This document shows positions 11,952 through 37,996 of a stretch of 64,000 nucleotides of DNA, one piece after another. Source of the stretch: Eutreptiella sp. 'Long Island Sound 2002'. Its lineage: Eukaryota; Protista; Euglenida. The first letter of the stretch is position 1. Every line of letters begins with the position of its first letter. The notes beneath the pieces were generated by a model that was not told where the DNA came from, ran no database searches, and saw nothing but the letters and a program-made list of their open reading frames with translations. The translations under genes and the position numbers were made by a program. The DNA is taken from assembly GCA_964036045.1 (NCBI GenBank), contig OZ038379.1, forward strand, positions 12,772,001 through 12,836,000, read 5' to 3'.

Positions 11952-12152
11952 CACAACACGTTCTCACCGTCCATGCACGAATTCGACGCGGCGATGGCAT
12001 CTCTTACCAAAGCGGTCAGTGAATACCATCCGTCCTTGCAATTTGACGTTGGAGTCCTGGTGGGTGGACGGAGCAGTTTGCGAGCCACCAAGCGGCCGTT
12101 GTGGATCTACGACCGCGCGCAGCATCACTTGAAGGCAAAGGAATGGGTGGAG
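11952..12152 (+). CDS. Carbamoyltransferase-like gene, first identified exon (HNTFSPS...KAKEWVE)
   Basis: ccgcag| acceptor, GAG|gtatgc donor, 67 codons, phase 0-0; it joins the next exon to give EWVE-APHHMSHA, matching the family V-x-HH-x-x-HA context. Confidence 0.72.
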
Positions 12153-13208
12153 GTATGCAATCGTGCGAAGACTGACAAGTGGATTGATCATCAGAGCGCA
12201 AGCCCCCGATTCTTCAAACGTTGTGCACAAGCGAGAAAAGGTGTGCGAGTGCATTCCGAGCATAACTTGGTGCCTGGAAATTCTAAATTTCGGAAGTCCT
12301 CGGTAGTCTCGTCGTGAGTATCCCCGGGAGAAAGCTCGGGATACCTGGGTCCGATCCCCGGATCCGATAACGTGCCTCCCCGCGGGGGGGGCACATTATT
12401 TGCTCCTTTTTGCTTTGTGAGTTGGTGCCTGGCCACGTGCACCCTAGGAGTCCTTGGTACTTTTGTAGTGAGTATCCCTGGGAAGCACCCTATTTCCTCC
12501 TTTTGTGCTTTGCAAAACAGCGAGGGGGTTAACGTGGTGCCAGGCCACTTTGCATCGCAGAATTTCTCGGTAGTATACGGGGGGGGGATCGCGAAATGTG
12601 CGCCATCGCGAAGGCTGCGCCTCGGTCTAGGGGGGATCGCGAAGTGTGCGCGACGGTCTGGGGGGGATCGCGAAATGTGCGCTACAGTCTGTGGTGAGTA
12701 TCCCCGGATGCATTATTTGGGAGATCGGGGTTCGACTCCCCGCCGGAGAGGCATTTTGTTTCCTCCTTGGCGCTTTGTGGAGGAGCGCTTCGTGCACCCT
12801 TGAATCCATCGGCTCCTTCTCGTGGGCGGACAATACCTCTCCGCTCCTCTACTCGTCCCGATCCTTACTGCCTGCCCCTCACCGAAATCCCCACGTCATG
12901 CCACCTCAATCCACTCACAATCACCCTCTGATCAGAGAAGGTCAACGGCAGGGGTGATCCTCGGCCTCCACGTGGCCCTGCCGCTCTGGTACGGCAGCCC
13001 AAAAGTGGATGGTCGAGTGCTGTCCCTCCCCGGGATCATCCCCTTGAACCCTCACTTGTCGGGGTTCACGCTCTGGGATCTGCCTGCACGCCTGTCTGCC
13101 CGTGCGCGCACGTGTCCGGTCGCGAGTGCACGTGCTTTGGCCGAGAGGTGTGTATGTTCGTCGTGTGTGCATGGCAGACGTGTGCTGAACTTTCATGCGG
13201 TCCCACAG

Positions 13209-13372
13209 GCCCCGCATCACATGTCCCACGCCGTTCTGGGGTTTTATGACAGTCCTTTCTCGAATGCGATTATTGTAACCCTCGACGGCAGGGCAGAAGA
13301 GTCCACGGGGCTGAACGTGTACGTGGCAGACAGACGGACCGGATTGCGGCGGTTCTTCCAGGCAGAAGCCAG
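13209..13372 (+). CDS. Carbamoyltransferase-like exon 2 (Kae1-like domain, HHMSHA...DG)
   Basis: APHHMSHAVLGFYDSPFSNAIIVTLDGRAEEST resembles the family HHxAHAxxAFxxSPFxxAxxLxxDGxGE; cacag| acceptor, AG|gtcctg donor, phase 0-2. Confidence 0.9.
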
Positions 13373-13989
13373 GTCCTGATGCTGCGGGTTTCAGAGGCTT
13401 GGGGCCAAAAGATGGAGGGGGTCTGGAGCGCCGCGGGGTCCCGGTGAGGAAATGCACCCTTCGGAGGTGCAAGGTGGATCCAGAGTTGCCGGGTCGCCAG
13501 CAGCGTCCGCCCGATCGGCCATGGTCCGGTGCACTGGTTCCCACTTGGGTTTGTGTGTGTCCGGGGCGGAGGGTGGAGGGTTCTGGAGGATTCGGTCGGC
13601 CGATCGGCCCGTCGGTCGCGCACGCACGTGAGGCTCGTCAGCCCCTTGGGCTGCAGTGCGTCCGCCTTCTGTTTCACTCTCACTTTCCGACAAAACTGTG
13701 GCGAGAAAAGAAAAGAGGAGGAAAACAAGCGCTCTCTATTCTCTGCTCCAAGAGGCTCGGGGTACGTGGTGTACCCCTCGTGCTTTCGTCCTGGGACCGT
13801 GCGACCGTGGCCGCCAGGCTCACGGGATGCCTGGTCGTCCCGCTGCCCTTTGCCCCCCCCCCCCCCCCCCCCCAAATTCTGTGACCCCTTGCTCCTCGGC
13901 CGTCCGACCCCGCGCGGCTTCTCGCACCCCGTGTGCCTCCGCCCCTTCTGTACTCCGCTGCTGCAAGACGCCTGCATGTGGCTGCTTAA

Positions 13990-14530
13990 ATGCCCGGCTC
14001 AGCACTGCTGCTTTGGTGCTCTGGCTGCTTTGTACAGCGACGTCTAGCTGCTCAGCGCCAGTGTGCTGCTGCGTGGTCCAGCAGATGTGGCTGCTGGGTC
14101 CTGTGCATCAGTCTGTAGCTGCTGTGCACAGCCGACTGGAGCTGCTCCGCGCAGCTGTGTGTTGCTGCCTTGCAGGGCCAGGCCGCATGGTCCAGCTGTG
14201 GAGAGCACACCGCTAGCGCGCTAACGCTCTAACGCGGAGCGGCAATTTGCAGCTGCGCAATGCAGATGGCTGCCCCCAGTAAGCGCCACGGGCCTCACAA
14301 TGCAGCTGAGCTCAGCTGCACCAACCGCATGCACACAGCTGCACAGAGCACAGTCGGTCGCCCAAAACAGCAACATATACTTGTACCTTGCAGCCAAACT
14401 CAGCTGCAGCTGCGCCACACAGGGACGCAACGCTGCGCGGAGTAGCAATAGACGGCTGCACACAGCAGCGACATCCTGCAGCAGAAGGACCGCATACCGT
14501 TGCAACACAGCTGCACCTTGCAACACAATG
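13990..14530. repeat. Degenerate CAG/CTG-rich foldback (MITE-like); the right arm is duplicated at about 15455-15550
   Basis: GCTGCTGTGCACAGCCG (about 14118) is inverted against CGGCTGCACACAGCAGC (about 14452); ACGGCTGCACACAGCAG...GCAACACAATGC recurs at 15467-15550. Confidence 0.5.
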
Positions 14531-14681
14531 CTTCCCACTCCGCTCTACCTGACGCCAGCTCTGCAGACATAGTGCGGGTGGGGGGTGGGGGGCTTGTAGA
14601 GGGTTGTGGAGGGTTGTTAAGGGCTACCGAGGAGACCCTCAGTATGATGCAGCCTTCAGGCTTGCGGTGGGGCTGTCTCAG

Positions 14682-14822
14682 GTACATCGAGGCCTACTAC
14701 TTCTTGGCCACGGTGCTCTTTGATCCGGCCGACTGCTTCCGCGTGTTCACCTGGCGGTGCCAGGAGGTGGTGGGGATGTTGACGGATTTTGCGACATTGG
14801 GTGCCCCTGGTCCACAGTTCAG
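14682..14822 (+). CDS. Carbamoyltransferase-like exon 3
   Basis: ctcag|G TAC ... TTC AG|gttggc, phase 2-2; YIEAYYFLATVLF...EVVGMLTDFATLGAP occupies the position of the Y..T..LGF...GKxMGLAxYGxP region. Confidence 0.78.
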
Positions 14823-15584
14823 GTTGGCTGCCTTGCCTCTCGCAGGTCTGACCCTGCAGCCCGCCTCTCGCCGGGACAGCGCCGGTCTCAAGGCGCGTGG
14901 GAGCCACAGAGGGCTCATGCCCCACCCCAACCTGGGGTCCCTGTTGGCGTCACAGGGCAGTCGAGGCCTGGGCTTTGTTTGCACCTTTGAGGAGGGAGCA
15001 CTGAGGGTCTCAGAGGGTTGCCATCGCGAAGATCTCTTGCTTGTCTGCCCCCCCCCCGACCTCCACCCCCGGCACAGGCCAATGCGAAGTTCATTCCAAA
15101 CACTGCTCCCTGCTTCAGAGAAGTCCGTCGTCTTACCCGCGGAGCGCCCGACTCCTCAGGCCAACGAACCTCAACGCAACAAGAAACGGGGGTGGAACCG
15201 GCTCCTACTTCTGTGGAGTTGGAGTTGTGTCTCTGGGGGGGTTTGGGACCAGGGACTGGGGAGTGCGGCCCCTGCCCTGCCAAGCTTTGGCACCTGGATC
15301 TGATCCTCGCCCGGACGAGTCTGCCGACCCTCTCGCCGGGGCACGGCATGCGAGGGTGCATGCCGCTTCTGTTAGCTGTATTCCAGTCCATCTCCGGGCC
15401 CGCCCCGGTAGACGGGTACCCTCAGCAGCGGTGCTGGCTGCACGAAACAGCAAGATGGCTCAACAGACGGCTGCACACAGCAGCTCAAACCGGTTGCACA
15501 GAGCAGTAGCATATGCTGCTGCAACACAGCTGCGCCTGGCAACACAATGCCATCGCCCAAACCCACCGTATGAACTGCTTCAGG

Positions 15585-15690
15585 GCCAGCCCCCCCCCCC
15601 CCCCCCTCGTTCCCCTGTCGGCCCAAATTTCAGCCACCACAAAGCGAGGGTGCAGGCCGTGGGCTGGTTCCCCTTGGGGACCAGAAAACA
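15585..15690. repeat. Dispersed ~100 bp repeat, second copy at about 33430-33530
   Basis: TCGGCCCA...AGCCACCACAAAG(C/T)GAGGGTGC(A/C)GGCCGTGGGCTG is shared. Confidence 0.75.
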
Positions 15691-15789
15691 GGGGAGCAGA
15701 CCTTTTGCTGCCCCTACCCCCCCCCCCCCCAACAGAAAGGGGGCCGGACTGAAAGCAGGCCCGGCACCCCCCCCACCCCCAAGCATGCC

Positions 15790-18340
15790 CTCCCCCAGCC
15801 CCTGCCCCACTCACACCTCCCTTCCCTGGCAGCGCCAGTGGGCCGTCCCACGGCTGCCCTCCTACCCTCCACCCTCCCCCAGGAGCGCCTATGGGCGATC
15901 CCACAGCTGCGCTCCACCTTCGCCCCTCTCCAGCGGCGCCTGTGGGCGATCCCACGGCTGCTCTCCCCCCCTCGCCCTCACAACCCGCCCCATTATACCG
16001 CCGGCCGAGTGGCCGAGCGGTCAACCCCATGAACTGCCGAGTGGCAGTCGTGGGTTCAATTCCCTTCCTTCCCCTTGTACCCCCAACGCACAACACAGGA
16101 AATACAATATAGGTAGCTGTACTACACGTAACTGTATTTTGCCTGCTAGTATTACCTACCTACCTACCAGTGCAATAGGGTATATTGTGTTATTACCAGT
16201 ACTGTATCTCCGTGACCCCTCCCCTACCGCCCCCCACAGCACATCTGCAGGTGCTTCCACTCACAGAACCTAAGGAGCGGGAGCCTCAACGGTGCCCCAC
16301 ACAGGTAGACCTCCCTCCCCCCTGCCCCGGCCCCTGCCCCTCTCGCCCCTCCCTGCCTCGATTGCAGCAGTGGGCTGTCCCACGGCTGCCCACCTGCCCT
16401 CCACCCTCCCCCGGGAGCGCCTGTGGTCGATCCCACAGCTGCGCTCCACCTTCCCCCCTCTCCAGCGGCGCCTGTGGGCGATCCCACGGCTGCTCTCCCC
16501 TCCTGCCCCTCACAACCCGCCCCATCGTACCGCCGGCCGGGTGGCCGAGCGGTCAACCCCATGAACTGCTGAGTGGCAATCGTGGGTTCGAATCACTTCC
16601 TTCCCCTTGTACCCCCAACACACAACACAGGAAATACAATATAGGTAGCTGTACTACACGTAACTGTATTTTGCCTGCTAGTATTACCTACCTACCTACC
16701 AGTGCAATAGGGTATATTGTATTATTGCCAGTGCTGTATCTCCGTGACCCCTCGCCTACCGCCCCCCACAGCACATCTGCAGGTGCCTCCACTCACGGAA
16801 CCTGAGGAGCGGGAGCCTCAACGGTGCCCCACACAGGTGGACCTCCCTCCCCCCTGCCCCGGCCCCTGCCCCTCTCGCCCCTCCCTGCCTCGATTGCAGC
16901 AGTGGGCTGTCCCACGGCTGCCCACCTGCCCTCCACCCTCCCCCGGGAGCGCCTATGGGCGATCCCACAGCTGCGCTCCACCTTCCCCCCTCTCCAGCGG
17001 CGCCTGTGGGCGATCCCACGGCTGCTCTCCCCTCCTGCCCCTCACAACCCGCCCCATCGTACCGCCGGCCGGGTGGCCGAGCGGTCAACCCCATGAACTG
17101 CTGAGTGGCAGTCGTGGGTTCGAATCACTTCCTTCCCCTTGTACCCCCAACACACAACACAGGAAATACAATATAGGTAGCTGTACTGCACGTAACTGTA
17201 TTTTGCCTGCTAGTATTACCTACCTACCTACCAGTGCAATAGGGTATATTGTATTATTGCCAGTGCTGTATCTCCGTGACCCCTCGCCTACCGCCCCCCA
17301 CAGCACATCTGCAGGTGCCTGCACTCACGGAACCTGAGGAGCGGGAGCCTCAACGGTGCCCCACACAGGTAGACCTCCCTCCCCCCTGCCCCGGCCCCTG
17401 CCCCTCTCGCCCCTCCCTGCCTCGATTGCAGCAGTGGGCTGTCCCACGGCTGCCCACCTGCCCTCCACCCTCCCCCGGGAGCGCCTGTGGGCGATCCCAC
17501 AGCTGCGCTCCACCTTCCCCCCTCTCCAGCGGCGCCTGTGGGCGATCCCACGGCTGCTCTCCCCTCCTGCCCCTCACAACCCGCCCCATCGTACCGCCGG
17601 CCGGGTGGCCGAGCGGTCAACCCCGTGAACTGCTGAGTGGCAGTCGTGGGTTCGAATCACTTCCTTCCCCTTGTACCCCCAACACACAACACAGGAAATA
17701 CAATATAGGTAGCTGTACTACACGTAACTGTATTTTGCCTGCTAGTATTACCTACCTACCTACCAGTGCAATAGGGTATATTGTATTATTGCCAGTGCTG
17801 TATCTCCGTGACCCCTCGCCTACCGCCCCCCACAGCACATCTGCAGGTGCCTCCACTCACGGAACCTGAGGAGCGGGAGCCCCGCCGGTGCCCCACACAG
17901 GTGGACCTCCCTCCCCCCTGCCCCGGCCCCTGCCCCTCTCGCCCCTCCCTGCCTCGATTGCAGCAGTGGGCTGTCCCACGGCTGCCCACCTGCCCTCCAC
18001 CCTCCCCCGGGAGCACCTGTGGGCGATCCCACAGCTGCGCTCCACCTTCCCCCCCTCTCCAGCGGCGCCTGTGGGCGATCCCACGGCTGCTCTCCCCTCC
18101 TGCCCCTCACAACCCGCCCCATCATACCGCCGGCCGGGTGGCCGGGCGGTCAACCCCATGAACTGCTGAGTGGCAGTCGTGGGTTCGAATCACTTCCTTC
18201 CCCTTGTACCCCAGCACACAACACCGGAAATACAGTATAGGTAGCTGTACTACACGCAACTGTATTTTGCCTGCTAGTATTACCTACCTACCTACCAGTG
18301 CAATAGGGTATATTGTATTATTGACAGTACTCTCTGTCCG
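15790..18340 (+). repeat. 532 bp tandem array with a tRNA-like Pol III head in each unit; degenerate copy to about 18700
   Basis: A-box TGGCCGAGCGG and B-box GGTTCGAATC with heads at 16003, 16535, 17067, 17599 and 18132; each unit has three TGGG-NNNN-CCCAC hairpin subrepeats (best copy CTGTGGGCGATCCCACAG) and (TACC)4. Confidence 0.93.
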
Positions 18341-19102
18341 TGCAGCGCCAGTGGGCGTTCCCACGGCTGCACTCCTCTCCTCCCCCCCCTTGACACAGTA
18401 ATCCTAAATTAGATAACTGTATTACCTTGGGTACACTTTACGGCATTTTGCCCACTAGTACTACCTACCTGCATAATCGCACTCTCGTATGCATAGTGTT
18501 GCCCTTGCTTGTGCCATAGGGTGTATTGTATTACTGGTACCGAATCTCCGTGACTCCCCCCTTCCCGCCCACTGCTACAGGGTACAGGTGCTTCGCTGCA
18601 CGGAAGCAGGGGAGCGGGAGCCCCGACGGTGCCCCGCACAGGTGGTCCTCCCTCCCCCCTGCCCCCCTTTGGCACTGCCCCTCCCCCCCTACCCCTGCAA
18701 CCCCTGTGCCGTGCCCCATGCCCCATGCCCCATGCCAGCACAAGCACGTCCGCACTAGGAGGTGTATACCCCGCTCTCGCACCGCATGGTTCGAGGGTGA
18801 GTGCGGTGCGCCTGAGCCTAACTTCCCCAAAGCGAGGCAATCCGTGGGCCCCTAAGGCCCTCTTCGGATCGGGAAGACAAGCCCAAAGCCCAAAGCCCCC
18901 CCCCTCGTTCAGCCTTCATGGCACCCCCCGCCCCCCATTGGCTCGGGCGGTGTGCTGTGGTGATTCCTTTTTTTTTGTATCTCGTGCCCCGTCCTTTGTC
19001 TCCAGCACTAAATGCCAAAATGGAGCTTATTTCTTTGGGGTGGACGAGAGGATGTGATGAGAGGTTGTTGACAATGGAGACCAGAAGTTGCTGAGACCCG
19101 AA

Positions 19103-19107
<5 letters not shown>

Positions 19108-19152
<45 letters not shown>
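19108..19152. repeat. (CT)n microsatellite
   Basis: Direct. Confidence 0.98.
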
Positions 19153-19154
<2 letters not shown>

Positions 19155-19301
19155 GTCGTTGCTGAGGACTTCACAGCCCTGGTGACGAACCACCTCCTGC
19201 GTGTGCAACTGACGGCCTCATCATGGTAGAATATGCAAAAGGAACAGGGGTCGGCCGTTGGCTTGGCCAATGCCAATCGTCCAATCGTTTTGCTGTTACA
19301 G

Positions 19302-19356
19302 GGAACACCTGACAAGCTTCTTTACGCATTCTTCACCGCGCAGCAAAGTGCGAGAG
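19302..19356 (+). CDS. Carbamoyltransferase-like exon 4 (REHLTSFFTHSSPRSKVRE)
   Basis: ttacag| acceptor, GAG|gtgtgc donor; phase 2-0 exactly bridges exons 3 and 5. Confidence 0.65.
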
Positions 19357-20474
19357 GTGTGCTGCTGTTCTAGCTAAGCCACAGATTTCCATACCTCATC
19401 CAGACATCTGACCTGAATTTAAAAAGCTGCCTCTATTTGCACCGGGTGCATATTCCGGCTTCCTCCGGAGGAGCTCTTGAAGCTCTTGACACGGGCTTGC
19501 GCGCTGTGCAAATGTTCAGGCGACTTCGGGCTACCCGCCGGGAACGGAACGAGCACCGTGGCAAGTGTGAAATCGCTGGAAATAACAGGGGGAAATACTG
19601 AGGCCGTTCCCCCAAGAACCACCTCAAAAGGTGCGTGGCCCATGCGGCTACTATTCCCCTCCCTGTGCCCTCCTCTGCCACCACCCCGGGCACCACCGAT
19701 GGGTAATACATGATGATCAGGAACCCCCTCGTCCTGTGTTTCATTTTATCTGGACGGGCCGTCGGTTTCCCCTCGGTACCCGCCCCCTGCAGCCGCTCAG
19801 CATCCCAGCAGCGCCACAGGTGTCCACCAGTGTTTCGTGGGCTGCAAAGGGCCGCCGTGTTCCACTAGGGAAGGAGGCAATGCGCTGACTCGCTGAGCGG
19901 GGCGGACGCATTGGACCGAGGTGGTTCAGCGGCTGGGCCGGGCACACGCGACACCTTTCACAAAACAAAACCTGCCAGCTGACTTACCCACTTACTCGCC
20001 AAACACTGACCACGCGTAGCCGGACGTGGCAGAGAGCCGGCGGTGTCCAACGTACCCTCCTGAACACCTACTGCTGACAAGACCGCTGGACCTTATGCCC
20101 AGCGTCCCCGGGACACGGCTGTTGCTTGTGCACTGCACTGCTACTGTGCAGCGGGCAAACCAGTTGCCATGGAATACCCTGCGACACAACCGTCAACTGG
20201 TCATCCGTTGACCATCACTGTCGGCGGTTGGCGGCTACACATCGGCGGTTGGGCGTTACCTGTCAGCCGTACTGCAGTGTTCTTTTGGGCGTTGGGGCCC
20301 ACTTAAGGGGGATTGACACCAATTTTGGACTGCGAAGTAATGGGCTACGATCTGCCCCCCTCCCCCCCTCTTAGTCCTGCACGGGGGTGGGATGCTTCAG
20401 TCGGCCACTTGTGGCCTCTTCAACCGTTATCAGTACTCCCTCTGTCGGCATTGCGCCCAACCACCTGGCCACAG

Positions 20475-20606
20475 GTATTCAAGTTGACGAGCGGCTTGGC
20501 GCACAAACAGCGGCTGGAGCTCGCGGCGACGGCCAAAGACGTCTTCATGGGCCTTGCCTTTGCGGACATCGACCGAGGGTTGGAGTATGGTGGCCACCGA
20601 CTGCAG
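20475..20606 (+). CDS. Carbamoyltransferase-like exon 5
   Basis: cacag|GTA ... CAG|gtgcac, 44 codons; RLELAATAKDVF resembles the family DLAASxQ helix. Confidence 0.78.
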
Positions 20607-22296
20607 GTGCACCACGTTGGCACTGCGCGCGCGCGTCAGCATGCGCATGCGCACGGGCGCGCGTATCCGGGGCCTCAGAGGGGACGTGGGTGACCGACTG
20701 CAGGTGTGGAAGTTGCTCGGAAGCGGTGCGGCTCCGCGCAGCATCCTCCGGGGCCACAGGAGGAGTCGCAGGGAGCAGCAGCGGCGCAGCCCATCAGGCG
20801 CCGGGCAGGGGGGCAACCTCACCGGCTGGCCCGGGTACCCGACTGGGCACGTCACTGGATGTCTGTTTAAGAAGTGCTCCCGCATGTTTTTGCATTATCT
20901 GCTGCGCTGGTTGTTGATTTGGCCGGTCGGGCGCCTGGTGGTGTGCTCGCCTGCGTTCTCTAGATTTGGGTGAGTTTCCCAGCCACAGTGAGCTGCTCTC
21001 TCTAGCAAGATCAGTCTCATGTCTCATGTCGGTCAGCAGACTATCTATCAGTGGGCGACAGGGTAAGGGAGGTACCAAATCACCAGAATTTGACCAGGAG
21101 TACTATGTAACACTGCACAACTCACAGGGGGGCGGACGTGCAGTTCGTCCAGTTCACTCAGGGAAGTACCGAAGTCCTAAATGTTATCATGCACGCGTGA
21201 TATTATTTCGGTGCGTGATAATATAGTGGGGCAGGGGGGGGGGGGGGGCAGTGTGCCAACTACTGGGCTCTGCTGACGGAACCGACACCATCAGGAACAC
21301 AGGCCGCAGCGGCCGGCAGAACGCAGCGACCCGACGCAGCACGCAAAGGGAAGGGCTGGGGACTGTCTGGGGCCCCGTAAAGAAACAGCAACCCAACAGA
21401 ATGTCACACAGGGGGGTTCACTCCCTTGCGTTACACCGTCCTGCCGCTTGTGCACAACCTGCCCCAGGCACTTGGTGCCAGATGGCGCACGTCACCAGGG
21501 ACCGGGTACCCCAGACTTGGCCTTGGCGGATGAGATGAGCCCGGCCCACGCCACGGCGTTTATCCGGGGTGCATGGGCTTTGTACCTCGTACACAAGGGG
21601 ATGTTGCCCCGCCATACAATGAAGTGCTCAGGACCTCATCGCAAGTTTTGTTTGCCTCTCCCCTTCAGGCAGCCTTTTCTTTGGTTGTGCAAATTCTGCT
21701 GCCTTGATTTGTTGACACGCCGTCCCCTGCAGTGCCGTCCGGAGATGATCCATCCGTCCATGCACGCACACTGCGTGCCTGCTCTGCCAGTTGGAACTTC
21801 ATTCCTGCCTCCATCTACAACAGTTCGACCTGTTCCACCTGCACCCTTTTGGGGATCCATTCCCCAAGTGACAAGGCAAAACCACTATTGGTAACGTGAA
21901 TCACGACTGTAAAACACAGTTATTTCTATGCCAGGAAAGCAACCATGCACACTCGTCATGCCGCTGGCTTGGATTTGGGCATGGGCTTTTTGCAGCCGTA
22001 ACATTTGTGGGCTTAAGTTTCTGGTGGGACAAATTGGTAGGATCCATGTGACCGAGATCCTGGAAGTTCAGCGGGATCAGACATGACAAAAAAGACCTGG
22101 AACAGGGGGCTGGTCAAAATAATATCACGTGTCAAAATAACATCACGCGCGTGATATTGTAAAGGGAAGGGGGGGGTTAGGGCAGCGGGGGGGGTGCGAG
22201 AGTTCGCTGGGCTGGTTGGCACACGCAGGAGGGATGGGGAGACCATGACCGTGAAGTAGGGGCTCCCCACATCCACCTGACTCTATTCGCTTTCAG

Positions 22297-22353
22297 GATT
22301 TGGAAGGCTTGGTGCTTTGTGGTGAAGGAGCGCAGGATGCGACTTTCAATCAG
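22297..22353 (+). CDS. Carbamoyltransferase-like exon 6 (DLEGLVLCGEGAQDATFNQ)
   Basis: tttcag|GAT ... CAG|gtgtaa, 19 codons; aligns to LxLxGGxALNxxxN; too short for the ORF track. Confidence 0.8.
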
Positions 22354-22720: not shown

Positions 22721-22861
22721 GCTGCTATGGAGCATTACAAGGTTCGAGTACATGTTCCACCCGCGCCCGGCGATGATGGAGTGGCCATTGGAGGAGCTTG
22801 GGCTGTGAACTCACCGCCACCTGAACACCAGCCGCTGCAGCACCTTGGCATTGGGGTTCAG
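22721..22861 (+). CDS. Carbamoyltransferase-like exon 7
   Basis: ctacag|GCT ... CAG|gtgatc, 47 codons; VHVPPAPGDDGVAIGGA matches the family VxPAxGDxGxAIGAA. Confidence 0.92.
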
Positions 22862-25068: not shown

Positions 25069-25185
25069 GATGCCGACGAGCTGGAGGCTCTCGTATCGAA
25101 GGTCGGAGTCACCAGGGCCACTGCAACGGAGATTGCACGGCTGCTGAAGGACGGTCAAGTCATAGGCATCATGAGGGGCCGGCAG
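25069..25185 (+). CDS. Carbamoyltransferase-like exon 8 (start of YrdC-like domain)
   Basis: ctcag|GAT ... CAG|gtgtgt, 39 codons; EIARLLKDGQVIGIMRGRQ matches AxLLxxGxIVGxxQGR. Confidence 0.9.
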
Positions 25186-26566: not shown

Positions 26567-26613
<47 letters not shown>

Positions 26614-26662: not shown

Positions 26663-26706
<44 letters not shown>

Positions 26707-26711: not shown

Positions 26712-26779
26712 TGCACTGAAGCACCGCTGGGATACACAGCTAGCGCCATTGACCGGCCTCAATTTGGCAGTGCACCAAA

Positions 26780-27120
26780 GAATACACTGCCCACTACCCC
26801 CCCTTGCAGTGTGGCAGTCAGCTGAAGAATGCCCACTGCACCCCTGTGCAGAAGAATAACATTGTCCACTACCCCCCCCTGCAGTTTCCCAGTGCACTGA
26901 AGTATATCACTACGTACTAACCCCCTGGCAGTGTAGCAGTGTGCAGAAGGATACCACTGCCCACTGCCCCCTTGCAGTTCGGCAGTGCACTGAAGAAGAC
27001 CACTGCCCACTGCACGCCAGCAGTGTGGCAGTCTGCTGAATGGTACCACTGCCCACCTCACCCCTGAAGAGTGGCAGTGTAATGCAGGATACCACTGCCC
27101 ATGGCACCCCTGCAGTCTGG
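26780..27120. repeat. Degenerate ~45-50 bp minisatellite (CCACTGCCCAC...GCAGT...GAAG), ~7 copies
   Basis: ACCACTGCCCAC recurs. Confidence 0.75.
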
Positions 27121-27565
27121 CCATGCAATATGAAGGCCTCATACAGGGGTCCTAGGCAGGCGGACTAGCCAACTGTGACAGGCTCTCGCCAAACCTGAAC
27201 CCAACTCCCCCTCCCCACACACTCACATACACACATAAACGCACTTGTGCTGCCTTGCACGGAGGTTCAATGCCAAGAGAAGTGAGTGCTGTAGGGAATA
27301 GGCAGTTGGCAGGGGAATTGGCGAATTGCACCCGCACAACAAGGGGAGAAACAGGACGTTTCCCAATCAAAAACCCAAGGAGCAAAACCATTGAAGCATG
27401 AGAAAAACAAAACCTGAAGGAAGGCATCGGCTTCGTACGTCAGACTGTACCATAGGGACCCTGAGAACGGGTCGTTTGTAGACCAAGGCACCAAGGTAGG
27501 GCGCTTTGTGCTGCCACTCATCACAACTGCTTTGTATCCGACCGAGCGGTGTTGCTTGCTCTCAG

Positions 27566-27647
27566 GAAATCGGGCCGTCACCGCTTGGGCATCGGGCGAT
27601 TGTCAGTCTGCCTTCATCCCCCTCCATCCGCAGTACCCTCAATCGAG
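27566..27647 (+). CDS. Carbamoyltransferase-like exon 9
   Basis: ctcag|GAA ... CGA G|gtattg, phase 0-1; GRQ-EIGPSPLGHRAIVSLP matches GRxExGPRALGxRSILAxP. Confidence 0.9.
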
Positions 27648-28196: not shown

Positions 28197-28358
28197 CAAG
28201 ATAGTTACCTTCGCTTTTTTGGTCTTTTTACCTTCGCTTTTTTGGTCTTTTTCATGCCTGCATGTTTGCATGTTTGCATGTGCATGCCGCCCGCAGGACA
28301 GTTTGCTACGGGTCCCCCCATCAGGGGGGACCCTTTCAGTCAGTCACAGGCACGCGCT

Positions 28359-29212: not shown

Positions 29213-29570
29213 AGGGCAGAGATGGGGGCTTTCCATAGCTGTACCGGCAACCTAGACCATACGTGCCATGAGGGCAGATCTCACCCGGAGCAGAGCACTG
29301 GTAAAGCAAAGAGAAGTGGGCCTGCAAAGTCCAAAGCAGAGCGTAGCAAAAGGGCGATAGCCTGTGAGAGGCCCCCCATCATGGGCCCAGAGGGCGGTTC
29401 CAAAGCTGAGCACATTATAAGGGTAAGCTCTGTGCCCTGTTACATTCTGAAGCAGAGCAGGGCAGAGATGGGGGCTTTCCATAGCCGTACCTGCAACCCA
29501 GACCATATGTGCCCCGACGGCAGATCTCACCTGGAGCAGAGCACAGGCAAAGCAAAGAGAAGTGAGCCTT
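29213..29570. repeat. ~110 bp direct duplication (29213-29330 / 29460-29570)
   Basis: AGGGCAGAGATGGGGGCTTTCCATAGC...GGCAGATCTCACC...AAAGCAAAGAGAAGTG occurs twice. Confidence 0.8.
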
Positions 29571-30089
29571 CAAGGGATGCGTGCACAAAGCAATAGAGTA
29601 GGACACAAAAAGGGCCACAGAAATCAAAGCAGCATAAAGTGACTCAGTCATAATGAGAACCTCGTGTCGGAGGAAACAGGCCCCTGCCCAAGATGGGAAC
29701 ACATCGTAATTAGTGAGTTGGAGATACGTTTGTTTCCTTGTTTCTCTGAAGTTGCTTATAGGCCAATGCACGAGACTTGGCCGACAAAACCAGCCGGAGG
29801 AGACTCCCACCCGCTCCCCCGTTGCTTCCTACTCTGAGACCCAGCAGGAACACAAGGGGGGTGGGGAACTGGTAGTGCCTCGGATGAAATCGTGTATGAT
29901 GGGGGGTGGGTCCCCATCCAACGTCTTGGCCCACTCCGGGACCCCCCCTTTTCCAGTCTGTTCACGGTGTCCCGTTGTCCACCGGGCCCCCACACCACGA
30001 CAAGGTCACCGGCCCCAGGGTCTAGGAGGGCATGGAGGAGGAATGGGGGCATTCCCATGGGCGGTTGAGGTTGATGCAGGGGAGTGAAA

Positions 30090-31295
30090 CAGATTGGACC
30101 GCGTTGACCATCGGTTGTGCGGGAGACTGAGATGCTTTTGGACGACTTTGGACATTGGGGCACGCCCTCGGACAAGAAACCCGAAGGGGCTGCAGAATTT
30201 TCAAGGCAAAGGGGGGAGGCAAAATGCCTGCCGATTGCAACCCACCAGCGATGGGTACCACAGGCAGTTGCTGATTCCTCGGCTGACCGTATCTCAGTGC
30301 ACTGCGTTCCAAGGCTCGTGGCAGGGCAAGTACAGGGAACAGGCGTGGGAACACCTGCCCACTGCGCTGCTATGTGCACATGGGTCATGACCCTTGGAAT
30401 GCACAAAAGACAGGGTCATGAGCAGTGCACAGAGGCTTGTGTGACACAGGACCAAGGAGTTCCGCCCCCCCCCATCCCCCCACAGCCCCCCCACGGCCTC
30501 CCACGGCCCCCCATGCCCCCCCCCCCCCCCAACTCGGGCCGCTGAGTGCGCAGACCCTCAGGGAACGCTTTCCTTGCGGCGCCTGTGGTGCACCCTGCGG
30601 TGCGCAGTTTGGGTAATTATACCAGAATATAGGCGGAATAGTGCCGCATGCATACACACATTTGTTACACACCGTTCCCCCCCCACACCATTTTTTTCTG
30701 CTAATTGATTGTACATTCCCCTTTTTGGGCCTCTATCTTTCACACATGGTGCATTTGATTCCGTATGATATTGATCTGTGATGGGCACTCTTTCATTCGA
30801 GGCCGTGGAGAGCATATGTTTGCCCAATTGTACACTTAGGCTGTGTGCCGTGAGCCGTGCACCAAGTTGGGGATGAACTGGGAGGAGCGCATCCTACGAC
30901 TCCATTGGATGATCCATGCTGTGGTTCACACCCAGCATTTCATCAACAAGCACAATCTCAAGTGCAAGCCGTATGGTCCATGGGGTCATTTTCTTGGACA
31001 GTGTACACTAAAGCTAATTACCCTTTCCCTGCGGCGCGCCTGCGACGCGCAAGAAGCGTTCCCTCAGCCCACGCACGGAACCGTTGGGAGCCTCCTGCCC
31101 TGTGGCACCAGGAGTACACTCACTGGCAACACCCGCAGGCAAAGTGCGTGGAAATGCTGCCCCCCACCGATGATGGTGATTTGGGGACCCTCTGATCTGT
31201 GCTGCACTTTCTCACATCATTTGTGGTGGAGGGCACCTTCCAAACATCGGTGTTTGGGAATGACTGAATGTGAAGCCTGTCAGCACCTACAATGA
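30090..31295 (+). pseudogene. Possible degraded DDE transposase remnant (weak Transib/RAG1-like resemblance)
   Basis: LHWMIHAVVHTQHFINKH...WGHFLGQCT(E/K)AN across a frameshift resembles the H..l.H...I...G...Q..E..N pattern; Cys-rich C-terminus; frame is broken. Confidence 0.3.
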
Positions 31296-31394
31296 GAACA
31301 TATCGTCCTTTTTGGGGGGGCTATTTCCTTCCAGTTGATACACTCTCTAGCACAGATGCTAAAGAAGGAACTTGATTGCATATTTTTAGCCCCC

Positions 31395-33250
31395 AACCCT
31401 CCCCCAGACTAGTGCTCTCTTTCATGGAATAAAATGCAGTATGAGCCCCATCTTCATGCTTAGTGCACGACAGTGCTTGCAATGCGTCACCTCTCTTGGC
31501 ATGGATTCAGCTGGATTTACGCCAGACATGACATCTTGACGCTGGATTGCACCGGTTTGAGGACGGCAAACATTCACGGCGGCAGGAACATGGGCACATG
31601 TGACAAAGCATGCAAATCGCACTCAAGGAAGAGCGACGCTGACAAATAATTTGATACCGTACGGCAAAGACCTTTCCGGTCTGCTTAGGAGCTTCTTTCA
31701 GGCATGGTACACATGTCCGTTGTGATGGAGTGTTGCATGGGGGGAGGAGGGGGGGGGTACGGCAGGGGTTTCCCGGCCATTTGTCTTCTCCACTGCCTTC
31801 CCCCATGCAGCCAAAAAAAGCATGAGGACGGCAAACACAACTGCTCTTCCAGACTGTGGGTTCAGAAGTGCCATGTCATACGAAAGATACGGCACCGGCT
31901 ACTGGGTGTACACACGGCACTCCGCCTGTATGGAACCCCCTCCCCCAAGTTCCCCAATGACTGGAAGGACGACCGGGGGGTGATTGGGGTTGTGAAGCGG
32001 AGGTGGGGGCATCAAAAGGGGCCGAGGCTGTCAGGAGGAGGAGATGTTGTTGCCCAAATGTCCCATTCTTTGTCGTTTAACAGCCCATAGCCGCCTGCTT
32101 GCATGGTCTGCAACAGTGGCAGCTCAGGGGCCCCCTGCTGTCTGCGGCTCAACCCCAACTTGTGGCGGTCCTAGGGCCACGCTCTGCAGGAGTGTCTACT
32201 TGGCACGCACCGACCACGCAACTTCTGTGCAAGTGTTCTGGACAAACCGTTGCGTTGGCGCTGGCCATTTGGGGGTTTCACGATGGATATGCACTGGACA
32301 GAGATTTGCTGATGCTAGACATGCCCTGGACATGCCTTTTTGGCCCACAACCCTCCCCCAGACTAGTGCTCTCTTTCATGGAATGAAATTCAGTCTGAGC
32401 CCCATCTTCATGCTTTGGTGCATGACGGTGTGATTGCAATGCTTCACCTCTCTTGGCATGGCTTGCGCTGGATATACGCCAGACATGACATTTTGACACT
32501 GGATTGCAACGGTCTGTGCGGCGCAAACACAACTGCTCTTGTAGACTGTAGGTCCAAATGTACCATGCATGAAAGAAGGTCCCAAGCAGACCAGAAATTT
32601 TATCACCTGCTTCTTCCTCTAGTACTCAACCATCAGACCTGCCTCCAAGTGGTTTACCGTAATAGTCAGAGGCACCTTCTGCTCCGTCTGCTACTTTTTC
32701 GGATGCACCAACTAAAGGACCTCCGTCTTCCGCTCCCTTTGGAGCCCCATCAAGTGCTCCTTCATCCGCCCCTACTGACCATATAGATCTGTGTATACGG
32801 TTATATTTTGATTGTTTCAACAGATTTTCATTTCACATTGCACAATCCAAGTGTTGTGCTCTTTTTTCTCGGGGAGCATGGCCGCTTTAGCTCAGTTGGG
32901 AGCTTCAGACTAAAGATCTGAAGATCCCTGGTTCGATAACGGGAGGTGGCATCACTCAGAGTAGCTCAGTTGGTATAAGCAGACCCGAAAGGCCTTGCCG
33001 TACGGTATCAAATTATTCGACAGCGTCGCTGTTCCTTCAGTCACAATTTTTTTGGCTGCATGGGGGAAGATAGGGGAGGAAACAAATGGCCGGGAAACCC
33101 CTGCCGTACCTCCCCCTTCCCCCCCCATGCGACACTCCCTCACAACGGACCTCGACCAACATGTGTCATATGAAAGGGCACCAGCCACTGGGTGTACAAA
33201 CGGTACCCCGCTCGCCTGTATAGAACCCCCTCCCCCAAGTTCCCCAATGC
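31395..33250. repeat. Cluster of direct and inverted duplications
   Basis: Direct: 31395-31572 vs 32351-32528, and 31875-31958 vs 33163-33249. Inverted: 31632-31686 vs 32977-33030, and 31757-31819 vs 33047-33112. Confidence 0.8.
32881..32951 (+). pseudogene. tRNA-Phe pseudogene (anticodon AAA instead of GAA)
   Basis: GCCGCTT/AGGTGGC acceptor stem, TTCAGA-CTAAAGA-TCTGAA anticodon arm, GGTTCGAT; 2 nt missing from the D arm and T stem mispaired; a second A-box (TAGCTCAGTTGG) at 32962. Confidence 0.8.
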
Positions 33251-34861
33251 CCCCCCCCCCCCCCACCCCGCCACTTGGGCGACCTCGCTACTTCCATTAG
33301 CTCACCTTGGCTCACTTGAATTACCGCCCCCGCTCCCCTCTTCCCCTCGTTTAGACGGGCTTGGACGTTGGTTAGTGGGTGTTGGTGGTGGTGCTCCTGG
33401 TCTTATCAGCAGGTTTTTGAAAACCAGGGCAAGCCCCCCCCCCCCAGCCCAGTCGGCCCATTTTTAAGCCACCACAAAGTGAGGGTGCCGGCCGTGGGCT
33501 GTTTTCCCCTTTCCGGGGACCAGGAAAATGGCCCAAAGAATGCATGGTCAGAGCAGTGTCGACCTGTGCGATCATGCAGGAGGGTCCGCAATGAAAAGCA
33601 CCACCCGATGACTGTATAACCAGAGCGGCAGCAACCGGTGCGGTTATGCAATAGGGTGCACACAAGTCACCCCCTATTTTCCCCTGCAGAAGCAACCAAA
33701 ACCAACAACACCGACACGAGGTGCGCAGCGTAAAACAAACGTAAATAAGCAATAGGACACCGCGGCAACAGATGGCAGATACAGAAGGACCCATGGACTG
33801 CATCACTGCCCATGCCCGGGAAGAGACCAAGGACATTACCCAGCATGTAGCAGTTCAGAGGATGATGCTATGCCGCCAAGTCCATGAAGTGTCCGGGTGG
33901 TATCCTCTGCCCAAGTACGTATCCAGCAGTTGTCAGATACAGGCCCAGTGTCAGAGGGCATCGCTGCAGGCCCAGCATTCGAGGGCATCAATACGGGCCC
34001 AGCATTAAAGGGCATAGGTGTAGACCGAACACAAGACGGACAATAGAGAGGACAGACCAAGAACAGAGCATGCTGCGAACGCATACGCAAAAGCACACGT
34101 GGGGCGCAGCGAGGAGGAAAACGGGGGTGGGGGCACACAAAAGGAGGAAAACAGCGCAATAGGAGCCGGAGAACCTAGCAGTTGAAACCCAAAAGGGGTT
34201 TGCTGTTCAGGGGAGGACGTCCAATTTAGGACACACATTCAAACACTGGAGCACAGAGCAAAGCGGACACAACACGTGCGGTCACAGTGTCAGAGCCAAT
34301 GAACCTGGTGGTTAGATCTCCCCAGTGACCGGGAAGTGCGTCACACAGGGGAGGACGTCCATGCCCAGAGATCTGTAAGACTGCCATTGCACAGGCAATG
34401 GGTTTTATAGTGAGGGACAGTCATTGCAGTGTCCCATGATGCGGGATGTTTCTGGTTTCGGCCGGCCTGGGACTGGGCAGTTGAAACACAGCCAGTGTGG
34501 GACAACCCGCTTTCCTTTCCCCGACTAGGCCCAGAATACGGACGGTCATGCGGGTGGGTGAGCGGCTTGATACCCACTGTGAGTCTCCACAGTGGGCCAG
34601 GTTAACCGCAACAGTCCCCTAGATAAGTGCAAGGCGGAGCACTGAGGGTCTGTCCAGACAGCGTCACGTCACCCTGCTGGACTGGGTGAACAGGCAATCC
34701 TGAGTCACCGATCCTCCTCCTCCTCCTCCTCCTCCTCCTCCCAGCGACTGGTCTTGGCCCCCTGTCCGCATCCCCTACCCCTGGTTAGACCCCCCATGCC
34801 CCGCGATCGGTCTGCAGTTGAGGTAGTGCTCCAAGTGGCATTTCCCTCTGTACCCCCGCAG

Positions 34862-34971
34862 AATTGCGGCGCAAGTGGTTCACTACGCTGCCGACGCTTG
34901 TGAGAGCCGAGCAATCCCCGTCGGTGATGCGAGACGCAGTGCTGTCCCCCTTCGGATGGTTTGCCCCAAAG
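34862..34971 (+). CDS. Carbamoyltransferase-like exon 10 (GC donor)
   Basis: ccgcag|AA TTG ... AAG|gcatgc, phase 1-0; ELRRKWFTTLPTLVRAE...SPFGWFA aligns to KxRExFRPFAPxVxxE...SPFMxFA. Confidence 0.82.
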
Positions 34972-35685
34972 GCATGCCTCTGCTGTATTCTGCTGCCGCG
35001 CTGCCCTCTCTACCTGAAGTGCACCCTCCCTCACTCCTGCGGATTGCCCCGCATGCGCTCCTTTGGTATGGTCGCATTAGGTCTGGGTAAGGGCGGCTGA
35101 TGCGACAGTCTGCAGCTTCAGGTCCTTTGGTTCAGCTCAACGGTGAGCTCAGCTAGGCTCATGCAGTCATCGCCTGAAGCCTAAAGCTCCTTGTCTGCCT
35201 GGGGTCTAATGGAGGACGTGTGCCCACTACCTTTTCGATCGGTAGCCGACATGGAGAAGGCGCCCGGGCGCTGCACAGATCAAAGTAGCGCCCGGTAATG
35301 CACGCATCTGAAGTTTGGGGGGGCGGGGTCGCAACGAAACTCCCCGCGCCTCCTTCCTGGAGCTGCCGGCCGACTTCGGGTTGCCCGATGGTGATGGGGC
35401 GCAACTACAGAGGCACCGCGCCCAACACCGCCCTTCTGGAGGCTCGAGAAAACCGCGCGCACGCCGCTTGCTCCCTCAAGCTGCGAAACCAACTTTGAGG
35501 GGAGGGAGCGCTAGAGAGTGGTATTTGTAGCAGCCGACTTTGCTCAAGTGTCATCGTGTGTGTGGCTTATGGGTCGTGGTTGGGGAGCTATAGTCCGGAA
35601 GTTCATAGACGGGGAGTTTTTCCGGCTTAAATATCATGAGTCAGGGCCCGTTCTTGAGCAACTTTCACGAAGGACAGCCCCTTGA

Positions 35686-35775
35686 GGACGGATCTCTAGG
35701 CCAGCGGTTGTGTTACTGCCAACCGCCGGGGGTTGCGCGCCAGCCACTGGCTGTTACTGGCCCAAATTTTCGTCC
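35686..35775. mobile_element. Possible ~90 bp MITE with GG..CC termini and TTAA-type flanks (Kolobok-like)
   Basis: TTGA|GGACG ... CGTCC|TTAA; a similar end CTTAAGGAC lies at about 63988. Confidence 0.3.
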
Positions 35776-36015
35776 TTAAGCACCGACTGCGGGTGAAGGG
35801 TCGCATTTCCTCTCTTTACTTGCATTACCCGGCGCTACTTTGATCTGTGCAGCGCCCGGGTGCCTTCTCCATGTCGGTGTGCGCGTGTACGCGGTGAAGT
35901 ACAAATCGACGAGATCCCCCCGCCCCCTCCGCTGTGTTAAGGAGCGCCCGGGGGGTTGTGTATGGGACTGCGCTTGCTCGTCTCGTTGTGTCGGGCTTCG
36001 GCCCGGGTCCGGCAA

Positions 36016-36148
36016 TGCCCCTGCCCCTGCCCATGCCCCTGCCCATGCCCATGCCCATGCCCCTGCCCATGCCCATGCCCATGTCCATGCCCATGCCCAT
36101 GCCCCTGCCCCTTCCAATGCCCCTGCCTATGCCCATGCCCATGCCATG
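36016..36148. repeat. (GCCCAT/GCCCCT)n hexamer repeat just upstream of exon 11
   Basis: Direct. Confidence 0.95.
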
Positions 36149-36197
36149 GCCCCGTGCCCTTGTTTGTGATTTGCGCGCGACACGCACGTCCCCTCAG

Positions 36198-36400
36198 GTA
36201 CTGGACACTGCGAAGGACCTGGCGGCCGGTCTTGTGCACAGCGACGGGCACGCGTGTTTGCAGTCGGTCTCGGCGGACGTGGACCCGTGGCTGAACGAAG
36301 TGCTGGAGGCCCTTGAGGCCCGCTCTGGACGGCCGGCGGTGCTGACGGCCGTGCCCTGGAAAGGCACTAAGATATCGGAATCGCTGCTGAATGGGTTCAG
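36198..36400 (+). CDS. Carbamoyltransferase-like exon 11
   Basis: ctcag|GTA ... TTC AG|gtccat, phase 0-2; [14 protein letters not shown]...WLNEVL...SGRPAVL aligns to AVxHxDGTARxQTV...LL...TGxPxLL. Confidence 0.9.
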
Positions 36401-36940
36401 GTCCATCGTTGTGTCAGGGACGGCACAGGGGCGCAGCCACGCTTCTGCCCCCGGGATTCGGGGGTCAAGCAGCCCCTCCTCCGGGGCACAGGATAGTGCC
36501 GCTTGGCCCAGACCTTCGGGCCACCGTTTCCCCCAACTTGGGGACCCTGAGACGGCGGGGGTTGTGTAGCCACTTTGCCGCCCCCCCCCCCCCCCCACAA
36601 GGTCCAGGGTGCGGACCAGCCGGGTATAGACGTGCTGAGCCGGGATTCCCGTGGCTTCTGCCACCCGCCCGATTGGTCCGGCTGTTCTGAAAAACGGGGT
36701 CGGGCTGTTGAGGTTTGGTCGTGCCGCAGTCCGGCAGTGTTTTCGTCGGTTGCGTCCAACATCGAGGGCGGTGTGATGCGTCGTGTCAGAGGCACCGGAT
36801 TTCGTGGCACAACAGCTCCCGCAATGTCTTGGCCCCGCGCACCTGCACTGGGCCGCCGGGGCGTGAAAGGGGCTCCATGCGGATGGTCCGGGCTGAGCCC
36901 TTGGGCCCCTTCCTCCGCCTCCCGCCGGTGTTGTGTGCAG

Positions 36941-37057
36941 GCAGGCGCTCGCTCATTTGGCAGACAGTCCGCTGCTTGACTGTGCCGTGCTCGGGGGTTA
37001 CCTGGTCACGAAAGCTCAGGCAAGAAATACGACACTGAGCCGGATGCCCCTGCGCAG
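36941..37057 (+). CDS. Carbamoyltransferase-like exon 12
   Basis: gtgcag|G CAG ... CGC AG|gtgtgt, phase 2-2; ALAHLADSPLLDCAVLGGYLVTK resembles the family C-terminal strand (LDxLVLGxYLVxK). Confidence 0.82.
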
Positions 37058-37725
37058 GTGTGTGCCCCATGCCTCCGCACAGTGCGGGCCATGCGAGCCG
37101 GCAGCGTGCACTGGTGGTGTGTGCTCGTGATGGCTTTGTGGCCCCGCGGTGCATGACGGGTGTTGTTGACCCCCGGGACCACAACACTCCTCAGAAACCT
37201 CGCGCATGTCGGTTGTGTACTGTGTACCGCGAAGTATTGGAAGTGGACTGTTGGCGGATTGATGGCGTACCGGTAGTGTACTGGTATCGTACCGGGGGAG
37301 TGTACTGAGTGCCGTACCGCATTGGAAGTGTGCCGGGGCTGCAGTAGTGTTGGACTGGGACTGTACTGGTCGTGCACTGGCGGTGCTGGCAATGGTGTGG
37401 CAATGTGCTGGTGGCGCACTGGTCGTATATTGGTAGTGTACTGGGGCTGTACTGATCGTGTGCCGGTCGTGTGCCGGGCGTGTGCTGGCAACGTGTTTGC
37501 CGTGCGATGCCAACTGATCGGGGGTGTACTGGCAGTGTCAAGAGCATGTCGCTTTTGACGGAGACGGGCTGACACTCACCTCCGGGTGCCTTTGACCGCA
37601 AGCTCCCGAGACATTGAAACGCTTTGAGTGCCTGGAGCACTTGGGCCTGCCCTGCTTCGAGTAGGCCCCCTGACCCCGGCAGTGCACCGGCGCTCGCCGC
37701 CGTCCTCACGCATTTCTGCGCACAG

Positions 37726-37996
37726 AGACACTTCAGGGTCCGCCCCGCGCCCATCATTCCATGCGACATTGGTCCGCGACACTCGGGACTCGGAGGAGGT
37801 GCCCCGGTCCACACTGTTCGCCAAAGGGGATGGGCCCGTGGTGCGAGTGCCTGGCGAACCGCCCTACATCCCGTTCCCTGGCGACGCCGAGCAGCAGAAG
37901 AAGTGGGAGGAGCGGCAGAAGGCCGTGCTGAAGCAGATGCGCGACCTGCGCCTGCTGCCCGAGGGGCGTCCCGCGGGGTCTGTCGCGGAGCACTGA
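37726..37996 (+). CDS. Probable last exon (C-terminal extension, TGA stop)
   Basis: cacag|A GAC is phase 2 and compatible with exon 12; GC3-rich coding style, ...EQQKKWEERQKAVLKQMRDLRLL...; no family homology recognised. Confidence 0.6.

Follow-up and report, generated by a model that had tools for sequence, protein, structure and literature searches.

We analysed a 64,000-nucleotide stretch of the genome of the euglenid Eutreptiella sp. 'Long Island Sound 2002' (contig OZ038379.1, positions 12,772,001 to 12,836,000 of the forward strand; hereafter the window) and a gene that occupies window positions 11440-37996 on the + strand. The gene comprises 14 exons, and its coding sequence of 2064 nucleotides encodes 687 amino acids and contains one stop codon, which is terminal. 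The window gene is a homologue of the class III (NodU/CmcH/TobZ-type) carbamoyltransferases. This homology is not in doubt because single exons score up to 77.7 bits with a hidden Markov model (HMM) of the family and because the predicted protein falls inside the family tree. The domain layout is complete, with a Kae1-like N domain followed by a YrdC-like C domain behind an N-terminal hydrophobic leader. Class III carbamoyltransferases are two-step enzymes in which carbamoyl-AMP is supplied by the YrdC-like domain.

Exon structure and transcription

We assembled the exon chain from paralogue HMM matches, splice sites, phases, RNA joints and cross-species conservation. The family HMM was built from 12 intronless paralogues and afterwards extended with 21 database relatives. 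The HMMs placed exons near 11524, 13158, 22727, 25066, 27560, 34867, 36216 and 36939, and the single-exon scores with the family HMM were 77.7, 42.8, 31.0, 30.4, 15.0, 12.7 and 10.3 bits. Exons 5-7 were not detected by sub-HMMs and were recovered via a loose end in the RNA, splice sites and alignment by eye. GT-AG borders mark twelve of the introns, and the remaining one, which follows exon 11, is GC-AG; the phases agree, and no internal stop interrupts the frame. The exons and the features on which they were placed are as follows.

11440..11712, + strand: exon 1 (91 codons), with the first ATG of the frame, the hydrophobic leader and the first Kae1-like strand
11952..12152, + strand: exon 2 (67 codons; first exon of an earlier model), attached by the RNA joint 11712>11952
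13209..13372, + strand: exon 3, HHMSH and LDGRAE (two metal His, metal Asp, oxyanion loop); family HMM 77.7 bits
14682..14822, + strand: exon 4, EVVGML segment (GKxMG counterpart); conservation in metagenome contig L036, RNA contig X2, phase fit to exons 3 and 5
19302..19356, + strand: exon 5 (55 nucleotides); RNA-mapped start, AG acceptor, GTGTGC donor
20475..20606, + strand: exon 6, LELAATAKDVF (counterpart of DYAATAQDVL in the family); AG/GT borders, phase 0
22297..22353, + strand: exon 7, LVLCGEGAQDATFNQ, altered GGVxxN loop; TTTCAG acceptor, GTGTAAGT donor
22721..22861, + strand: exon 8, PGDDG, fourth metal ligand; family HMM 42.8 bits, Pfam Carbam_trans_N 329-345
25069..25185, + strand: exon 9, start of the YrdC-like domain, ending in ...GIMRGRQ; 31.0 bits, AG acceptor, GTGTGT donor, phase 0
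27566..27647, + strand: exon 10, EIGPSPLGHRAIV (GPRALGxRS counterpart); Pfam 21.3 bits, family HMM 15.0 bits
34862..34971, + strand: exon 11, LRRKWFTT (KxR position; Arg kept, Lys lost); 12.7-13.3 bits
36198..36400, + strand: exon 12, ...VLTAVPW (SxN position; Ser and Asn lost); Pfam 18.8 bits, family HMM 30.4 bits
36941..37057, + strand: exon 13, end of the YrdC-like domain (LADSPLLDCAVLGGYLV); C-terminal sub-HMM 11.9 bits, phase fit
37726..37996, + strand: exon 14, charged C-terminal tail and TGA stop; phase-compatible AG acceptor, 90 open codons

A preliminary description of this DNA, made from the sequence alone, had proposed a 13-exon chain of 596 residues with consistent phases and a missing N-terminus. 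We obtained the same chain independently as exons 2-14 (11952-37996, 596 residues), and all eight motifs that had been quoted were found in order on the + strand: HHMSH at 13215, LDG inside exon 3, EVVGML at 14764, GEGAQD at 22321, PGDDG at 22766, GPSPLGHRA at 27572, LRRKWFTT at 34864 and LTAVPW at 36342. The N-terminus, however, is present. The earlier start coordinate, 11952, is exactly an RNA-proven acceptor, and the gene starts 512 bases farther upstream, where exon 1 provides the ATG, the leader and the first Kae1-like strand with the predicted base His; the frame of exon 1 holds no in-frame ATG upstream of 11440.

Further details bear on individual exons. Exon 1 matches paralogue HMM positions 39-103 (E 0.012), and by motif alignment only its His (residue 65, in SVHSAAIAL, an H[DS]xxA motif) aligns to the general base of GdmN. 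In exon 2, FDVGVLVGG aligns with FDVGVVVGG of the Euglena longa protein P0048, and exon 3 can be aligned with the region of NovN and GdmN that binds the metal. The 3' end of exon 5 is set solely by the donor and the phase. Exon 6, which was paired by eye and has a weak HMM match, has the top coding-potential score among the exons (0.43 bits per codon). Exon 7 lies in a 33-residue alignment without gaps to the paralogue segment EGLVLTGGVALNARLN...VHVPP, and APGDDGVAIGGAW in exon 8 has the same letters in P0048. Exon 9 alone gave chance matches only against solved structures. Exon 10 ends in phase 1, compatible with exon 11; the spacing from SPFG to HSDG is 26 residues, equal to that of a paralogue on C12, which fixes the exon 11 junction and implies the GC donor. 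The exon 13 donor, GTGTGTGC, resembles four other donors in the gene, and the sequence that read-through past it would add, up to the stop at 37128, resembles non-coding DNA (-0.31 bits per codon). Exon 14 scores 0.18 bits per codon in frame, compared with 0.01 at the 99th percentile of intron windows; acceptor, phase and codon usage are the three features that support its placement. Large open reading frames inside the locus, on both strands, matched no Pfam family.

The gene is transcribed and spliced. The joint 11712>11952, across a GT..AG intron, occurs with 0 mismatches in RNA contigs from two estuary metatranscriptome runs (X1 and X2). It was absent from the genomic run X3, one contig of which spans 11400-13842 unbroken, through the intron. 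In a small run labelled with the organism (X10), a contig covers 11461-11712 and stops at 11712. Another RNA contig, from X2, covers 14771-14823 and then departs from the genome sequence; the 30 letters beyond this point have a single mapping, at 19303-19332, and thereby define intron 4 (joint 14822>19302). RNA backs two of the 13 junctions. Among the 12 that the preliminary description contained, 14822>19302 gained support in this way, the upstream joint was added, and the others rest on sequence. The estuary contigs are identical to the spliced exons of the gene, which places the organism, or a strain very close to it, in that habitat with the gene transcribed. Of the words of 11400-16100, 29% occur in a run with a second organism label (X7).

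Motif states and selection

We compared the exons with Pfam piece by piece and used the joined 687-residue model for local alignments, for BLAST against the proteins already collected and for trees. The pieces match Carbam_trans_N at positions 125-161 (exon 3, 15.7 bits) and 329-345 (exon 8, 11.9 bits), each below the cut-off of 24, and Carbam_trans_C at positions 16-50 (exon 10, 21.3 bits) and 83-131 (exon 12, 18.8 bits), each below the cut-off of 27. The matches are collinear in both domains. The proposal of a fully intronised TobZ/NodU/CmcH homologue was correct.

The catalytic motifs of the family, conserved in TobZ and HypF, are KxR...SxN in the YrdC-like domain (hereafter the tetrad) and HxxH...D in the Kae1-like domain (PMC9654439). 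In GdmN, whose YrdC-like domain adenylates carbamoyl phosphate, the Fe ligands are H133, H137, D156 and D333, the base is H27, and the oxyanion hole is formed by G157/R158 of LDGRGE (PMC9633730). We read motif states from the local alignments. In the window gene the Kae1-like metal ligands are kept, with HHMSH, LDG and PGDDG in the ligand columns, and a counterpart of the base His H27 is present by motif alignment. The nucleotide-site motifs are altered, as the preliminary description had also reported: KxR reads L-R-R, with Arg kept and Lys lost; SxN reads TAVPW, with Ser and Asn lost; GPRALGxRS reads GPSPLGHRA; GKxMG reads EVVGML; and GGVxxN reads GEGAQD in an alignment without gaps, with the second Gly and the Asn lost. 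LDGRAE is no sign of erosion, since GdmN reads LDGRGE there (PMC9633730), closer than the DGGG of the paralogues.

The states of the same motifs in the relatives fall into two groups.

Bacterial-type relatives and the NodU-like proteins of a jellyfish, Cladocopium and Entosiphon: GPRALGxRS, KxRE..RPFAP and NTSFN present in nearly all; Kae1-like motifs kept except the Entosiphon GG loop
The 12 tabulated paralogues of this genome and the transcripts of Euglena gracilis, E. longa, Urceolus and Jenningsia: no KxR or SxN; HHxxH, DG, GG[VC]xxN and PGDxG kept in most

The loss of the tetrad is therefore not peculiar to the window gene but common to the whole second group. Among the sequences compared, the sole change confined to the window gene is that of GGVxxN to GEGAQD. 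Almost all the others have GG[VCIL]xxN, the exceptions being Entosiphon (GDLALN), P0015 (GGGALN) and the poorly aligned P0023. The GG loop is part of the nucleotide pocket of the Kae1-like domain, a role drawn from the ASKHA (acetate and sugar kinases, Hsc70, actin) fold generally.

An exhaustive protein search with exon 3 returned no full-length transcript-derived protein and one 57-residue fragment, P0002, which is 68% identical and has the same unusual LDGRAE signature. The P0002 contigs come from ENA metagenome assemblies. They do not belong to the window's own genome, where the best non-self match to exon 3 is only 45% identical. The longest of them, L036 (2195 bp), contains three collinear blocks that correspond to part of exon 2 (12090-12155, 59% amino acid identity), exon 3 (68%) and exon 4 (65%). 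The introns between the blocks are shorter than those of the window gene and unalignable to them, and all five splice sites visible in L036 share their codon positions with the window gene. A Nei-Gojobori comparison over the 122 codons of exons 2-4, a span that ends before GEGAQD in exon 7, gave proportions of nonsynonymous and synonymous differences (pN and pS) of 0.22 and 0.73 and a ratio of nonsynonymous to synonymous rates (dN/dS) of ~0.09, with dS saturated. This estimate is far from 1 and shows that the window gene is under purifying selection; it does not fit the decaying pseudogene that the preliminary description had set against its own reading. In searches for homologous proteins, the frame of exon 3 returned the window's own gene call only, and exon 8 returned no candidate. 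Exon 8 also found no orthologue among the metagenome contigs, where it hit mostly long bacterial-type contigs that match VHVPPAPGDDG.

The euglenid family and repeats within the locus

When the 2.28-Gb genome to which the window belongs was scanned in six frames, it proved to contain dozens of carbamoyltransferase-like loci, and many of these consist of one open frame 570-730 residues long (examples of intronless loci are L001-L008, L013, L015, L023 and L024). Both Pfam domains scored above threshold in nine out of ten intronless frames tested, and the tenth, L003, matched the N domain only. We compared an E. gracilis transcript of the family with the genome and found 68 matches at E ≤1e-8, which represent at least 54 distinct loci, a lower bound with 72 out of 200 candidates scored. 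The whole-genome scan with PF02543 scores the best candidates only, and the window gene is not among them. That the PF02543 matches could be Hsp70-like was considered and rejected, since Pfam shows them to be true carbamoyltransferase family members. The best match in the genome is 51-58% identical to the E. gracilis transcript, compared with 80% between E. gracilis and E. longa. Retroposition is a lead for how the family expanded in this genome.

Several copies had features of their own. One near-identical carbamoyltransferase-like pair lies ~430 kb apart on C10 (69.52M and 69.96M), and an inverted pair lies ~7 kb apart on C5 (28757540 and 28764594). The copy at C12:46158493-46173947 (L009, L020, L033, L034 and L053) is multi-exon over ~15 kb and has the top Carbam_trans_C score, 147 bits. 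Its motifs are GPRALGHRS, YRNKPW..SPVAS and INTAFR. The introns of this copy lie at other positions than in the window gene, and the last exon extends from ...VAVMRGRQEIGPR to the end. Two long proteins in NCBI/ENA records, P0003 (2294 residues) and P0004 (7939 residues), show 33-36% identity to the HHMSH exon, in one case along six stretches, and may be multi-domain or repeated carbamoyltransferase-like proteins.

The euglenid sequences form one clade in the tree (support 99/99). Entosiphon, which keeps the tetrad, is sister to the remaining euglenid members, and the window model lies inside the subclade of the latter (93/87). The pair of E. gracilis and E. longa branches next, followed by an unresolved radiation of the expanded copies and the window gene, whose branch is very long (1.69). 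Provided that the root lies outside the euglenids, the tree would place a single loss of the tetrad after Entosiphon diverged. A hydrophobic segment occurs within the first ~25 residues of all six euglenid proteins examined and of the Cladocopium protein, with hydropathy scores (KD17) of 1.7-2.5 in the euglenid proteins and 1.68 in the window model. The distance from this leader to the Kae1 His is 25-80 residues in euglenid proteins and ~120 in Cladocopium. Bacterial-type and cnidarian proteins begin directly at the Kae1 strand, without a leader. The leader is probably a signal peptide or an anchor.

We compared the window gene with the systems known for this family. The structurally solved class III O-carbamoyltransferases, TobZ of Streptoalloteichus tenebrarius, GdmN and NovN, have the same domain order, and the window gene shares with them both metal His, both metal Asp and the base His; its LDGRAE resembles LDGRGE of GdmN. 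Unlike TobZ and GdmN, it has LxR for KxR, GPSPLGHRA and GEGAQD, lacks SxN and the GdmN dimerisation domain, and adds the leader, a charged tail of ~110 residues and 13 introns. Rhizobial NodU/NolO and eukaryotic 'nodulation protein U-like' proteins (Rhopilema, Cladocopium) are 25-31% identical to the window model over ~500 residues; they keep the full tetrad and the GG loop, both of which are absent from the window gene, and the Cladocopium protein shares the N-terminal hydrophobic segment. The best-scoring relative is P0079 of Entosiphon sulcatum (246 bits, 31% identity over 551 residues). Like the window gene it has the leader, and an acidic residue replaces the second Gly of its GG loop (GDLALN), but it keeps KxR and NTSFN. 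The rest of the euglenid clade (E. gracilis EG_transcript_5080, which is P0078; E. longa P0048; Urceolus P0047; Jenningsia P0018; and the loci of this genome), none of which is characterised, shares with the window gene the leader, the tetrad loss and the kept metal site and base His. Identity within this clade is highest to P0078 and P0048 (31-33%). Its other members keep GG[VC]xxN and mostly have DGGG, and many of those in this genome are intronless, in contrast to the 13 introns of the window gene. Literature searches on Euglena or euglenid carbamoyltransferase, NodU and the Pfam names did not bring up this family, which is apparently undescribed. The family had been called mainly bacterial. 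It does have bacterial members, but its relatives in jellyfish, Cladocopium and Entosiphon show that it is not foreign to eukaryotes.

The introns contain several repeats. In intron 4, open reading frames recur every 532 bases over 16185-18161 (at 16185, 16717, 17249 and 17781), which indicates ~3.7 tandem copies of a 532-bp unit; Tandem Repeats Finder was run at a period ≤500 and so missed this repeat. The same intron carries a very high-copy dispersed repeat at 15585-16100, where the summed word depth in X3 reaches thousands, compared with ~10 in the flanks. This repeat has many rearranged joints, and diverged copies also occur in metatranscriptome contigs. Intron 9 contains 2.1 copies of a 92-bp tandem repeat (26928-27121). 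In intron 11, a (Pro-Met/Pro-Leu)n dipeptide-like repeat at 35960-36140, with a weak Trypan_PARP match, is in frame with exon 12; it lies outside the model because of the AG acceptor at 36197.

Function of the altered protein

Because the Ser and Asn of the tetrad are lost and the leader is of a secretory type, TobZ-style synthesis of carbamoyl-AMP is unlikely. We consider it probable that the window protein is not a canonical O-carbamoyltransferase but either a neofunctionalised metal-dependent protein or a non-catalytic member of its family. Such a protein would enter the secretory pathway or be membrane-anchored, and it would be unable to form carbamoyl-AMP from carbamoyl phosphate and ATP in the manner of TobZ. 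From general knowledge of ASKHA proteins, adenylate is probably bound less well in the Kae1-like pocket now that Glu has replaced Gly in the GG loop. The preliminary description had likewise proposed a pseudoenzyme or neofunctionalised protein. This is partly supported, but the losses in KxR and SxN belong to the clade and not to this gene. The description had counted the same substitutions in active homologues against its reading, and euglenid homologues do carry them, although none of these is known to be active. Several points weigh against our reading. Every exon taken singly scores under the Pfam gathering score, the saturated dS makes the dN/dS value a rough one that covers exons 2-4 only, and the RNA for two junctions comes from estuary metatranscriptomes and not from a labelled culture. 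The leader is judged from hydropathy alone, and the role of the GG loop is taken from general knowledge of the ASKHA fold. The motif losses may also be compensated, as with the Asn that replaces the KxR Lys in an active phage enzyme (PMC8670742).

That enzyme, a 5-hydroxymethylcytosine carbamoyltransferase with the same two Pfam domains, requires ATP and carbamoyl phosphate and keeps GGVAFN, GPRAL, the Arg with PFAP, and NTSFN (PMC8670742). It indicates that the family accepts very different acceptors and tolerates loss of the KxR Lys, so that this Lys alone is not decisive. The window protein might accordingly be an active O-carbamoyltransferase or a related acyl-adenylate transferase with a rebuilt adenylate site, formed for example by R-R-K of LRRKWF, in which the KxR Arg is retained. 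Strong purifying selection and the intact metal site and base His would suit such an enzyme, and a family of at least 54 loci is easier to explain by enzymes with diverse substrates than by dead proteins. Against this, the SxN Ser and Asn are absent from all euglenid members but Entosiphon, tetrad-keeping relatives, both bacterial and eukaryotic, conserve these two residues strictly, and in the window gene GGVxxN is missing its second Gly and its Asn as well, residues that every other member compared retains, save for a Gly-to-Asp change in Entosiphon. We regard an active enzyme of this kind as unlikely, though it is the main rival. Less likely still, the protein could be a non-catalytic partner of a catalytically competent paralogue, as the preliminary description had suggested. 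GdmN provides a precedent, since it works as a homodimer and its substrate pocket is shaped by a loop that the other monomer contributes (PMC9633730). Many paralogues are present, and the window gene, alone among the members compared, has a broken GG loop but is still under selection. No paralogue adjoins it within the window, however, and the paralogues are themselves without the tetrad.

Two further explanations concern the integrity of the gene. The idea of an inactive C-terminal part of a larger tandem-domain protein, with its N-terminus elsewhere, arose with the preliminary description, whose model began at the internal acceptor 11952. It falls because exon 1 completes the N-terminus: this exon is joined to 11952 in RNA, opens with the earliest ATG in its frame, and can be aligned with the N-terminal leader and first Kae1 strand of complete euglenid transcripts. 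We consider it highly improbable. That the gene is decaying into a pseudogene, or that its open frames line up by chance, could explain why the individual Pfam matches are below threshold and why a collection of 15 billion proteins yields no transcript-derived protein. This was rejected as next to negligible on the intact frame of 14 exons in phase with no stop in 687 codons, the spliced RNA, the conservation confined to exons with its low dN/dS, and the family HMM scores.

The reading that we favour, a neofunctionalised metal-dependent or non-catalytic protein, can be extended into a more specific scenario that we offer tentatively, with considerable doubt that it holds as a whole. A secretory NodU-like enzyme may have given up carbamoyl-adenylate synthesis at an early stage of euglenid evolution, after the split from Entosiphon; dozens of genes may then have radiated and reused the Kae1-like metal centre on glycans or on other luminal or surface substrates, and the window gene, having also lost the nucleotide loop, would be a conserved non-catalytic regulator or partner. 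For gene finding, the exact reproduction of the 13-exon chain indicates that short euglenid exons spread over 26 kb are recoverable from sequence alone. The series from the tetrad-keeping Entosiphon protein to the window gene without the GG loop is a natural one for what each motif does. In a whole eukaryotic lineage, copies without the carbamoyl-AMP residues, but with the metal site and the leader, have been retained, multiplied to at least 54 loci in one genome and kept under selection, which points to an unrecognised activity or a pseudoenzyme family in euglenids.

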